Shown: positions 1-6,800 of the stretch, one piece after another
How positions within the stretch are numbered: position 1 is the first letter of the stretch
Layout of the letters: every line of letters starts with the position of its first letter
Source of the DNA: Adineta vaga
Lineage: Eukaryota; Animalia; Rotifera
Reading direction: 5' to 3'
DNA: 64,000 nt
Assembly (NCBI GenBank): GCA_021613535.1
Contig: CP075495.1
Coordinates: 12,090,001-12,154,000 of the forward strand
Position numbers and translations under genes: made by a program
The notes under the pieces: generated by a model
Seen by the model: only the letters and a program-made list of their open reading frames with translations
The model's database searches: none
Told to the model about the DNA's origin: nothing

Positions 1-2222
1 CTAATGAAACATTACAAATTTACAGCAGCTGAAATTATTGCTTGGTTAAGGATATGTCGACCGGGATCGGTTATTGGACCTCAACAAAATTATCTCGAAG
101 AGTAAAGATTCTCGTTTAGTCATTCATTCATAATGGAAAATGATTGTTTCTAGAAAACAAGCGTGGCTATGGTCATTAGGTGATATGTATCGAATTAAAG
201 ATCGTCCACGATATATGTCAACTTACGGTATCAATTCTACTATGGATACGACTGGACATAATCTACTTCGATACTCAATAGGAGACTCTAATAATAATAA
301 TGATGTACGTATTTTATCTATCAAAAGGAATGATTTTTTACTCATAAATGTATATATAGGTCATTTTCAAAGAAGAAAATGATAATGAGATAACACAAGG
401 TGATCGATTGAATGAAATAAAAGCGCGTCGTATGCAGCAACACCATTCCACAGGACCATCTCATTGGGCTTCTCCAAACGTTAATGTGACGTCGAGTTTA
501 ACGTAAGATTATTTATTTCTTTTCTTCTCTTTTTCTTGTTTTGATGAAAAGCCTTTCAAATCTAAACTAGTGCGAAAAAGAAGCTTTTGCATGTTTAACA
601 AAAAATAACTAATCATTTAGATGTAAATATTGTAATAAAACTTATCAGTCATCAGCAACATTGATCAAACATATGAAAAATCAACATACAAATCAATTCT
701 CCGTTACATGTAATCAATGTATCAACAGATCATTTTCAACAAAAAAAGCTTTACAAATACATCAAAATCGTATGCATAAGAACAATAATGCTATCGCCGA
801 TGGTGGTGGTACCGCTAGGTACTTGAGATTAGTTTCTAATCGCATGGGTGAATTGTTCATGTTGAAAAATCATGATCATAGGAAAATAGTTGTAATTAAC
901 TAATCAACAAATTGTTTGGGAAAATTTGGTTTTTACTTTTTATTTGTTGCTCGCTATTCATTTTTATTGCTCGAAAGCTGCTCGTTGAGTGATAGGGAAT
1001 GGGTGTTGTTTGGTGTAAGAGAAATATTTTTTTCTAGTCTGTTCACAAGACCTTTATCGCCAGCAGCAATCACGGATGATGAACATGTAGCACCACTTCG
1101 ACTATACAAGAACCGTGCAGTTACGGCTCCTATCAATATTCATGAAACACATCGATCGACTCTATTTGCTACACTTCATTCACAAAGGTGTTTTCATGAA
1201 AGAAGATTTCAGATTGCCTTTGTCATATATATATCAACTGTCCTTTCGCTTTTATATTTTCAGTTGTTTCATTAGGCATCCTCTTTTTGCCTGTTTGACC
1301 GTGTGTATAAAAACCGTTCCTTTTATGCATGATTTAGTACCTTTTTGGTGATAAAAAATAACAGGCCAACGCTAAATGTTTTCCATTGTTTTATTGATTT
1401 TATATTAAAAATTTGATTTTCTTCATACAGCTTTGATCCATCGTCGACATACAAACGTGCTCAAACAGCATTGATATCAACTGGTAGTGTTCCAATTCAT
1501 AATGTTTCATCATCGATGAGTCCATCGGCTAATCTACGTCGTAGCTATGCACCGGTATCAAATACACCTTCGAACACACTATTGAATTCTAATACACGAA
1601 AACCTCGTTCTTATATATCTCCATCAGCATCAACAACAAAAACGTAAGATTCTATATAGAGAAATGACATTCTTAGGATCAAACACTTTTATTTAGCAGA
1701 AAAGTATTATTAATGAGGCAGAATAAATAGAATGTTTAAAACATTTTAGTAAAAGATACGTTTATATACGTGATAAAAAAGAAAGTCTAATTGAAAAAAG
1801 AGAAAGATAAATAGATCTTTTCATTATTTATTGACGTTAAAATTTCTCTCAAAATATTCAAAAGACATCTATTAACATAAATAAATCTGTTCTTTTTTTC
1901 TTTGTTCTATAATTGAATTCATTGTATATTCTAGGCCAATGTATTCCAGTGGACGTTATATGACTTCAACATTGAATGATAATATGGGCACAACATTGAC
2001 TATATCTGATAGTGATAATCGTGATCCTGTTTCATCAGCGATATTGAAAACTTCCTCAAATCAACAATATCGTGGAAAATCACCTGTAACCAATAATACT
2101 CCATTACCTACTCATTCTTATTATACACGATCAAAATCGGTAATTGATTGCAAATTAAATTATTTCTTTAATAAATTTATCGATTTCTCTTCTATTTAAT
2201 TTAGTCTTATTCCAAATACTAA
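1..2222 (+). CDS. CDC14: CDC14-family dual-specificity phosphatase, 3' part (5' end outside window)
   Basis: Exon 1-101 reads [34 protein letters not shown], the Cdc14 [13 protein letters not shown] motif. Further exons: 154-304, 360-502 ([13 protein letters not shown], conserved Cdc14 tail motif), 621-818, 1038-1187, 1431-1643, 1935-2139, 2205-2222 (stop TAA). All junctions are GT-AG and frame-consistent. Confidence 0.9.
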
Positions 2223-3845: not shown

Positions 3846-6800
3846 ATGTTCAATTCATTGAAAAGGTGGGTGCAAGATGTGACGGTCGATCTTAATCCGT
3901 CACTACCACCCTTATCATCATCAACAGCAACAACAATATCATCACCTTCATCTCCATCCTATTTATCGTTATCTTCAAAGCCAAGAATCATACATCCATA
4001 TTCATATTCTACAGCGTCTTCAAACGAACGCTTAGCAATAAATCCATCATCATCGTCGAAGATGGGTCTCTCGAGACCAATATCGATGGATAATGTACGT
4101 AGTACAAAATTAATAAATACTTTCATGCCACCACCACCACCTGCATCACCTGGTGAACTTGATTTAAGTCATTTAAATCGCGAAGAACAAGAACATATTG
4201 CGAATGTTTTAAGACGAGCAAGAGCAGCCGATGAACAACAAATATCAGTTCCACCAGTTATTGTCCATTCCATACAATCGCCACCGGCATCAATAGTTTC
4301 GGCGTCATTATCGCTTTCAGCATCATTATCATCATCGACATCTACATCAACAAGTGATTTCAATAGTGAAAAACCGGAAAAATATGAACCGAACGATAAA
4401 AATACTAATATCGATAATCACGAAATGTAAGTAGATTAGTTCTTGCATGTTTCACTTTATCTCATGAAAAGTCACATCAGTGCAAACCTGCTTTAAGATT
4501 TTCACACATCATTTATTTCGATAAATTTTCTAATTAACTTTGTCGCTTTAAAGGTGATGCATGTCGTACGAGACAATAAAACAAATTATTTCTTTTCCGT
4601 CTTTTCTTCCTTCTCTCTGTAACCTTGTATTTTCCAGACTCTTTTTAAATCTCTCTCAATATATATATATATATAAATATTTAGCTAACACGCAAACAAT
4701 GATAAAAAACAAAAAAAAGTCTCAGGTAAAGAAAATGTCAATTACAAAAAGATTACAGATAAATATATTTTTATCAGAATTTCTCTTTTTTCGTTTTCTC
4801 TCTCAGTCAATCAAAAGTCAAAATGCTTTTATTTGAGAAATCATGTGAAAAAAAAACTTGCATTCGATCTATTTGAAATGATCGAGTGTATTTTTCTTAA
4901 ATTTGATGATGGATGACTTCTCACAATATTTTCATTTCTTTATTATTCATAGATATAAAGATCAAGAACTTTCAACGTCACCATCACTAGAATCAATAAC
5001 AGCAATAACTATTCACCGATGTCAAGTATGTAATGAAGAGCAACAAATGAAAGAAAACACACCAATCTGTCGTCAGTGTCAAAACGACGAAGAAATTGCT
5101 CAATTAATACAAAATAATACTATTCCTGTAAGTAGAATTAAATGTTTTGTTGACGTTACGAATCAACACTTCAAATATCCTTTTTTGTTTCGTATTTTAC
5201 TAGCATACGTCGATAAGAAAATCATCATCTCCTGTCCAAATAGAATGGAATGAGAATGAGAATGAGAATGATAAAATCTACGATAGTGTCATAAGGATTG
5301 ATCAGGAACTAATAAAACAAAATTCCCCCATTGAAGAGTATGCATCTCATCTGGTAGTTCCTCATTGCATTGACAATATGAATGATAATCAAGAACAAAA
5401 TGAAGATGAAGAAGAAGAAGAAGAAGAAGAAAAATACGAAGATGGAGGAAAACAACTATGTCAATCATCAAATCTTGAATCGTCACTTCCCATGAAAATA
5501 CGATCAAATAATCTAACAGAAATCGATGAAAACGATTTTTTTTATCAAGGACCAAGTTCTTATATTGCAGCAATAGATGATAATCAAATGCTCGATAAAA
5601 ACGAAGAAGTATCAATACCATCCTATAAAATCGATGAATACATTGATGAAGATGATAATGACGAACGTGATCATGTTAAAGAACTTGAAGAAACGATCGC
5701 AAATTTATCAAAACATTTACCACTTACATCATCACAAGTTAATAATACGGAAACTACAGGAATTACTACAAATTTACATCAACCATCAAGTTTATCCGTT
5801 GGTAAAATTGATATTGATTCAATTCTTGAAATGGAAATTGAATCACCATCAACAGATGAACAATATATAGAGTCGTCTTCATCTAATCGACCTTGTTCAG
5901 TATCTTCTCAACATCCTCTTAATGTGCCTATTACTGTACCGATATCATTTAATAATAACCCTCGAATAAGTCTTAGTCGTTCGTCTGGTGTACGCGAAAA
6001 TCTAACTGATTTATTGTCAATGACAACAGGAACATCATTATTAACAGATACAGCAACAGCAGAATCAACAACACCACAAGAATCCTATTATTCCGATCAT
6101 CGACCATTACAACGAACAGCATCAACTTATGGCAAGGTATAATTTTTAATATTAATTTAATCGAGACACGAAACTAAAATCTAGTTTAGTTAGATTCATT
6201 ACATTTGATGGATGTTTTCTATTTCTATGTAGTTTCGACCAAGATGTACTACACTATCCATACAATTAATAAGAAAGCTGTAGGCGATCTATTATTTCAT
6301 TAAAAACAAACTACATCCGCCACCTCTCTCTCTCTCTCTTTTTCTCTCGTTCTCTCATAGAAAGTTCTCTTCCACACAATTTATAAATATTGAGTACATC
6401 TTCGAATTACCTAGAGAAACATTGTAATTGGTTTTTCTTCTCATTTAGCGTATGATACTACCAATGCATCGACAAAAACGTAATTTACCATCTGTACCAT
6501 CAATTATGGATCAATTACAATTGCGACGCGTTAACTCGGAATCTCGCTTTAGTCTTCCCGCTGTCCCACCAACGATTCTTATCACAAATAGTAATATTGA
6601 TGATGAAAGTGATCTACTTGAAATTGATCTCAATGATCCATCTGGTTCAAAAATTCGAGCAGCACGTTCAAAAACAGAATCAGAATTAGCTAATAATAGT
6701 AATCAGACTGATTCTCATCTGAGAACACTAAGTACAACAAATCAATTACTTTCGATGGATGAAATAGTTACACCAAGAAAACCAGTAAAACAATTACGAG

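Follow-up and report, generated by a model that had tools for sequence, protein, structure and literature searches.

A conserved two-finger C2H2 exon, most likely a cassette, in the CDC14 phosphatase genes of bdelloid rotifers

Introduction

Can the tail of a CDC14 phosphatase hold a folded zinc-finger module that the gene may include or leave out, and what would such a module do for the enzyme? Targeting of CDC14 enzymes is generally ascribed to short motifs in their disordered tail. An optional folded zinc-finger module kept across the bdelloid rotifers would thus represent a different way to aim CDC14, which is a modest claim. The question is raised by a stretch of 64,000 nucleotides from Adineta vaga (contig CP075495.1 of assembly GCA_021613535.1, positions 12,090,001 to 12,154,000), here called the window, to which all positions refer unless noted otherwise. 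The original prediction held that nucleotides 621–818 form a symmetric in-frame exon of a CDC14 gene encoding two C2H2 fingers.

Our analysis favours, with a probability of roughly 0.75, the reading that 621–818 is a real and old coding exon of CDC14, most likely a cassette, that its fingers serve as a targeting module, and that its splicing is under a control of the Rbfox type, as the flanking introns suggest. In the mechanism that we propose, the exon would place a C2H2 module of two fingers in the tail, about 25 residues past its SLiCE-like helix, and alternative splicing would allow the gene to make CDC14 with or without fingers. An Rbfox-type factor would set inclusion in particular cells or states via intronic (U)GCAUG elements, and the fingers would then bring the phosphatase to nucleic acid or to a partner protein. 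If correct, the locus would moreover offer a small natural example of regulated splicing that involves conserved GCAUG elements; to our knowledge, splicing control is almost unstudied in the rotifer phylum.

Results and discussion

Gene architecture and anatomy of the finger exon

The genome searched comprises 100.8 Mb in six contigs at about 30% GC. The window belongs to contig C2 of this genome; the gene of interest lies on its plus strand and spans about 3.7 kb, starting about 1350 nt upstream of the window and ending at position 2222 (Table 1). It is assigned as a CDC14 phosphatase from its DSPn and DSPc domains and its predicted catalytic loop. The deposited model P0151 (690 aa), which matches the window exons at 100% and already includes the finger exon, shows the Pfam architecture DSPn (E 5.3e-54) plus DSPc (E 1.7e-14), both above the cut-offs, plus zf-C2H2. 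The catalytic signature HCx5R(S/T) is found as HCKAGLGRTG, and the sequence AVHCK/AGLGRTG (slash, exon junction) spans an exon junction both in L011 and in P0002. Beyond the CDC14 gene, a next plus-strand gene is indicated at 3860–4430 and 4955–5130, where an exon bearing a CxxC...CxxC motif comes after a long Ser/Thr-rich open frame.

Table 1 Features of the CDC14 locus in the window
Feature	Position (nt)	Strand	Remarks
CDC14 exon, end of catalytic domain	1–101	+	P0151 residues 290–336 map at 100%
CDC14 tail exon X2	154–304	+	Alignment with C5 paralog
CDC14 tail exon X3	360–502	+	SLiCE-like motif; ends SSLT; GTAAG donor at 503
Intron before finger exon	503–620	+	TGCATG 588–593, CTAAT branch-like site, then TTTAG acceptor
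Zinc-finger exon, most likely a cassette, 198 nt	621–818	+	Phase 2 at both ends; fingers nt 622–687 and 709–777
Intron after finger exon	819–1037	+	Conserved GTACTTGAGATTA block; GCATG 842–846
Second symmetric cassette exon X4, 150 nt	1038–1187	+	Alternative acceptor at 1050 in deposited model
Third conserved TGCATG	1326–1331	+	Within X4–X5 intron
CDC14 tail exon X5	1431–1643	+	
CDC14 tail exon X6	1935–2139	+	
Last CDC14 exon	2205–2222	+	SYSKY, then stop

The splice boundaries of the finger exon are an AG at 619–620 and a GT at 819–820. Base 621 completes the codon begun at 501–502, the end of exon 360–502, and the codon begun at 817–818 can be completed by 1038, 1050 or 1431. Translation of 622–816 yields C-x2-C-x12-H-x4-H for finger 1 and C-x2-C-x13-H-x4-H for finger 2. 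Compared to the classical spacing C-x2-4-C-x12-H-x3-5-H, finger 1 is an exact match and finger 2 has x13 in the Adineta-type copies; the aromatic and Leu core expected of the class is present as well. Pfam recognises two stretches of the exon with zf-C2H2_4 (E 1e-9; 38.7 bits, cut-off 27) as well as with zf-C2H2 (E 1.5e-6; 28.7 bits, cut-off 25.2). The original prediction of a 198-nt, phase-2/phase-2 in-frame CDC14 exon therefore agrees with the sequence in boundaries, phase and frame alike; the finger spacings that it gave (x12/x4 and x13/x4) are reproduced by the translation, and the Pfam scores exceed the cut-offs.

The open frame of the exon begins only three codons upstream of the acceptor (TAA at 610–612), and no ATG is found in this frame upstream of the first Cys. 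For these two reasons the finger segment cannot be a separate gene. The probability that 66 codons stay free of stops by chance is estimated at about 0.004 per copy, taking about 8% of random codons to be stops at about 30% GC.

Conservation in the paralog and in relatives

A six-frame search of the whole genome returned one other good copy of the exon, on contig C5, with 59% amino acid identity. Apart from C5, matches were weak and generic, reaching at most 37% identity where they covered the bulk of the exon and exceeding it only in stretches of about 20 residues. A second CDC14 gene occupies the C5 locus; its exons are collinear with those of the window gene, and the two genes share an upstream neighbour. 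The deposited protein of the C5 gene, P0170 (I4U23_024303, Adineta vaga), includes the finger exon. At 219 nt, the C5 exon occupies the same intron position, in the same phase, as the window copy. The splice contexts of the two are nearly identical (acceptor TTTAG/ATGTAAATATTGTA, donor AG/GTACTTGAGA; slash, splice site), and no alignment was obtained between the introns flanking the two exons. The shared neighbour, with DnaJ-like open frames, lies just upstream of the window on the minus strand (L011, 1711–2972). As it is conserved beside the C5 paralog, the two CDC14 genes are attributed to a duplicated block.

The same six-frame search of the whole genome found no donor gene for exon shuffling. 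Of the proposal that a symmetric cassette had arrived by exon shuffling, the symmetry and the cassette behaviour (see below) were upheld, and the shuffling origin was not.

Given how widespread C2H2 fingers are, and that short open frames do occur in AT-rich introns, one might regard the segment as a chance open frame, or as a fragment of a transposon or neighbouring gene, in a CDC14 intron. This explanation is refuted by the count of only two copies in 100.8 Mb, one per CDC14 paralog, and by the conservation of position and phase in all bdelloid copies examined; the absence of a start codon before the first Cys argues in the same direction. We consider its probability practically negligible.

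The assembly GCA_905250025.1, from a close Adineta relative, contains two loci with an intact exon, one model having it (P0154) and one lacking it (P0002). Compared to the window, its finger exon shows 88–89% nucleotide identity without gaps. The introns flanking this exon show 74–77% identity with small indels (75% for the upstream intron), and the short constitutive introns show 50–65% identity with long gaps. A scan of environmental sequences with an alignment of the finger module provided ten genomic CDC14 loci that hold the exon in place. The tenth (L027) begins inside the exon and was left out of scoring. Two further loci with the exon, fetched via deposited proteins, come from Didymodactylos carnosus. 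In total, 15 genomic copies were compared: the window, C5, two in GCA_905250025.1, nine environmental copies of rotifer-like character and the two of Didymodactylos carnosus.

All 15 copies share the acceptor TTTAG/RTGTAAA and the donor AG/GTA, keep the same phase at both exon ends, and are free of stops. Exon lengths are 198, 204, 207, 216, 219, 327 and 348 nt, all multiples of 3, and changes in linker length of up to 150 nt are without exception frame-preserving. In several copies the frame closes one to two codons past the donor and so delimits the exon. All 15 genomic copies examined carry the zinc ligands. Among 12 proteins, C1, C4, C30, C33 and H47 show no change at all, and H17, H22 and H52 are almost always kept. 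Losses occur in deposited Rotaria models, where P0158 carries H17N (plus a Tyr to Cys exchange in finger 1) and P0165 lacks the last His of finger 2; these single-ligand losses are a hint that part of the multiple copies are under relaxed constraint. As the exon is intact in all 15 copies, it is older than the split of the sampled bdelloid lineages and older than the C2/C5 duplication. The original prediction had called for a comparison with relatives that covers the presence of the exon, its ligands and its dN/dS (see below). The exon proved to be intact with its ligands kept, and is neither absent nor degenerate nor derived from a transposable element.

A further environmental contig (L028, JAAUXV010284650.1) gave three weak matches to the finger module at 29–40% identity, and probably represents an unrelated multi-finger gene.

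Substitution rates

Between the window and GCA_905250025.1, dN/dS amounts to 0.20 for the finger exon and to 0.12–0.14 for the fingers (Fisher p 6e-4). At mid-range and greater divergence the ratio of the exon is near 1. This rise is a consequence of low synonymous change within the exon: synonymous divergence is 0.09–0.19 in the finger exon, 0.16–0.27 in exon 1038–1187 and mostly 0.3–0.6 in constitutive exons of the same comparisons. Non-synonymous divergence of the finger exon is similar to that of other tail exons. Low synonymous change is typical of alternative exons. Because the synonymous sites are themselves constrained, dN/dS alone is not proof of selection on the protein, and its use as the sole proof of coding selection was dropped.

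The unusual conservation of synonymous sites and the drift of dN/dS toward 1 in mid-range comparisons could also mean that a function of the RNA, or one in the regulation of splicing, keeps the segment conserved and that it is seldom if ever translated, in which case the zinc fingers would be a relic. The lack of an inclusion transcript in the protein searches (36–114 aa and 380–1207 aa, see below) fits with this explanation as well. Stops and frameshifts should then have accumulated, yet 15/15 copies are open, and no length change departs from a multiple of 3, not even where the linker has grown by 130–150 nt. Moreover, even Didymodactylos has kept the eight zinc ligands and the F-S-[ST]-K-K core, and dN/dS between close relatives is 0.12–0.20. 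An untranslated relic is therefore very improbable, and a coding exon is the reading that we retain.

Intronic GCAUG elements and an Rbfox-type factor

On the sense strand of the 3.7-kb gene there are only three GCATG words (589, 842 and 1327), all of which adjoin the two cassette exons; the background in the window is 5.3e-4 per base. The downstream GCATG is found 24–38 nt past the donor in 15/15 copies. These include the C5-type and Didymodactylos copies, in which the downstream intron has otherwise diverged around the kept GCATG. Every C2-type copy retains the upstream TGCATG, about 30 nt ahead of the acceptor, and the third TGCATG (1326–1331) is kept in the close relative. The finger exon has a conserved GTACT donor, a weaker one than the GTAAG type found at other exons of the gene. 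In other animals, Rbfox sites downstream of an exon favour its inclusion.

A search for the Pfam domain Fox-1_C gave no match anywhere in the genome. A short RRM pattern of Rbfox, used as a lead, gave exact matches on C1 and C4, and the reversed control gave none. The corresponding exons, in L031 (C1:3911400–3914423) and L032 (C4:9957400–9960423), encode KRLHVSNIPFRFRD as part of an Rbfox-type RRM. In L031 the exon reads KRLHVSNIPFRFRDEDLKAMFE, and its best matches among solved structures are RBFOX1, RBFOX2 and ASD-1 of C. elegans. Given these matches, a predicted trans-acting factor for GCAUG is encoded in the genome. The conserved (U)GCAUG in the introns on both sides is suggestive of an Rbfox-type control of finger-exon inclusion. 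With the Rbfox-regulated cassette exons of animals the locus shares a symmetric exon, conserved flanking introns, GCAUG elements and an encoded RRM of the Rbfox type; we found no literature on Rbfox control in rotifers.

Skipping and inclusion

Four cDNA-like sequences were found in relatives (L015, L016, L017 and P0177), none of which has the exon spliced in. They must be RNA-derived, because they hold long open frames in contigs too short for introns. In L016 (Logan run SRR22100215), L017 (JGI 3300002344) and the intronless P0177, the SSLT at the end of X3 is joined directly to the X5-equivalent, so that both cassettes are skipped. L015 (Logan run SRR5248431) has lost all upstream introns, retains the intron after SSLT and ends 22 nt into the finger exon; the two contigs L015 and L017 match at 95.5% identity as far as the precise end of the exon. 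Skipping of the finger exon is therefore real in relatives, and the intron upstream of it is removed slowly.

Database models contain the finger exon and X4 in all four combinations of presence and absence, X4 being present or absent independently of the finger exon. P0002 and P0153, two models on one contig, differ solely in exon 1038–1187. The acceptor of X4 in the deposited model lies 12 nt downstream of 1038, and a search for X4 on C5 gave no separate match.

The models with the finger exon may be ab initio predictions. A spliced-in exon was sought in three ways. A word search with the exon alone, among proteins of 36–114 aa, found nothing; a search with the finger region of P0151, among proteins of 380–1207 aa, returned genome-derived models only; and the environmental scan returned genomic loci and no cDNA. 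We infer inclusion of the finger exon in mRNA from the conservation of its frame, phase and ligands. The proposed cassette nature thus holds on the side of skipping, which is seen in L016, L017 and P0177 and matched by models of both kinds, and has its inclusion side from conservation.

The A. vaga models of both paralogs (P0151 and P0170) include the exon, as would be expected if it were constitutive in this species and its skipping elsewhere were a peculiarity of those species or minor mis-splicing. Conversely, three independent cDNA-like sequences of relatives skip the exon, and it is present in the gene behind L015, a sequence closely related to the skipping transcript L017. The conserved flanking introns, the weak GTACT donor, GCAUG and the low synonymous divergence are moreover the usual marks of a regulated exon. 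A constitutive exon is hence considered improbable, and a cassette exon remains our preferred assignment.

Fold of the finger module and possible ligands

AlphaFold2 predicts helices at residues 11–21 and 41–52 of the exon peptide, with a short hairpin before the second, at a mean pLDDT of only 66. The helices sit where finger helices are expected, with moderate confidence. Matches were obtained to tandem fingers of the Krüppel type, namely Aart (1.6e-10), SALL4 (about 1e-4) and ADR1 (3.5e-3). The linker between the fingers measures 7 residues in the window copy, 17 in the C5 copy and about 48–55 in Didymodactylos. Ser, Thr or Ala predominate at the usual base-contact positions –1, 2 and 3 of the helices; conserved charged residues are a Lys at position 6 of finger 1 and a Lys-Lys in finger 2.

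Compared to the two-finger C2H2 DNA binders ADR1 and SALL4, the exon aligns to tandem fingers, and the window copy has the canonical linker of 7 residues. It differs from them in that the linker of the rotifer exon varies from 7 to about 55 residues, and in having H-x4-H in both fingers. The variable linker, the H-x4-H spacing and the small contact residues argue against a sequence-specific tandem reading of DNA, which appears unlikely. A low-specificity binding of nucleic acid or chromatin, by contrast, would deserve close to even odds in our estimate, and binding of a protein partner might account for a smaller though still considerable share; what is left of the estimate goes to something else. 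Since the module lies about 25 residues past the SLiCE-like helix, we speculate that a ligand bound to it would lie near the active site.

The most far-reaching scenario would be a bdelloid CDC14 specific to certain cell types or states, in which the fingers tether the phosphatase to DNA or chromatin beside a self-activating SLiCE helix, and which is switched by Rbfox via the pan-bdelloid GCAUG. In this complete form the scenario is doubtful. If true, it would mean a chromatin-targeted, CDK-opposing phosphatase in animals that are unusually tolerant of DNA damage.

Comparison with the CDC14 family and other phosphatases

Like the animal CDC14A and CDC14B, the bdelloid enzyme combines DSPn and DSPc with the HCKAGLGRTG loop, a variable and largely disordered tail that starts with a SLiCE-like TQGD-x-L helix, and what are most likely alternative tail isoforms. 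It differs in that the bdelloid tail carries an inserted, predicted two-finger folded module. In DUSP12/Yvh1, a dual-specificity phosphatase carries a zinc-binding domain at its C-terminus, and this domain is believed to guide the enzyme to a particle that contains nucleic acid. The similarity lies in the joining of a PTP-fold phosphatase to a zinc-binding module; unlike the bdelloid case, DUSP12/Yvh1 belongs to another phosphatase subfamily, and its zinc domain is not a classical C2H2 pair and is constitutive.

The helix that precedes the module is encoded at 360–400, within exon X3, where a TQGD-x-L-x3-K motif is kept in the bdelloid CDC14 tail and closely matches the pseudosubstrate helix of vertebrate SLiCE. 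The human SLiCE peptide, TQGDKLRALKSQR, binds in the active site and enhances catalysis (PMC11407943). The bdelloid motif may thus extend SLiCE beyond the vertebrates.

Among the 150 nearest CDC14 cluster representatives no C2H2 motif was found, including all of the non-bdelloid ones; the bdelloid representative among the 150 is a skipped-exon model, and those whose names were looked up are from brachiopods, molluscs and vertebrates. The expectation that CDC14 proteins elsewhere are devoid of C2H2 fingers is borne out within this set of 150. Neither a CDC14 with zinc fingers nor the CDC14 of bdelloids was the subject of any paper returned by full-text literature searches. Gene models that combine CDC14 with the fingers have, however, already been deposited for Adineta, Rotaria and Didymodactylos. 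The fingers are thus a lineage-wide and most likely optional part of bdelloid CDC14.

As a separate observation on the family, one of the non-bdelloid CDC14 representatives (P0001, 459 aa) contains the catalytic region twice in tandem, which reflects either a local duplication or an artefact of annotation or assembly.
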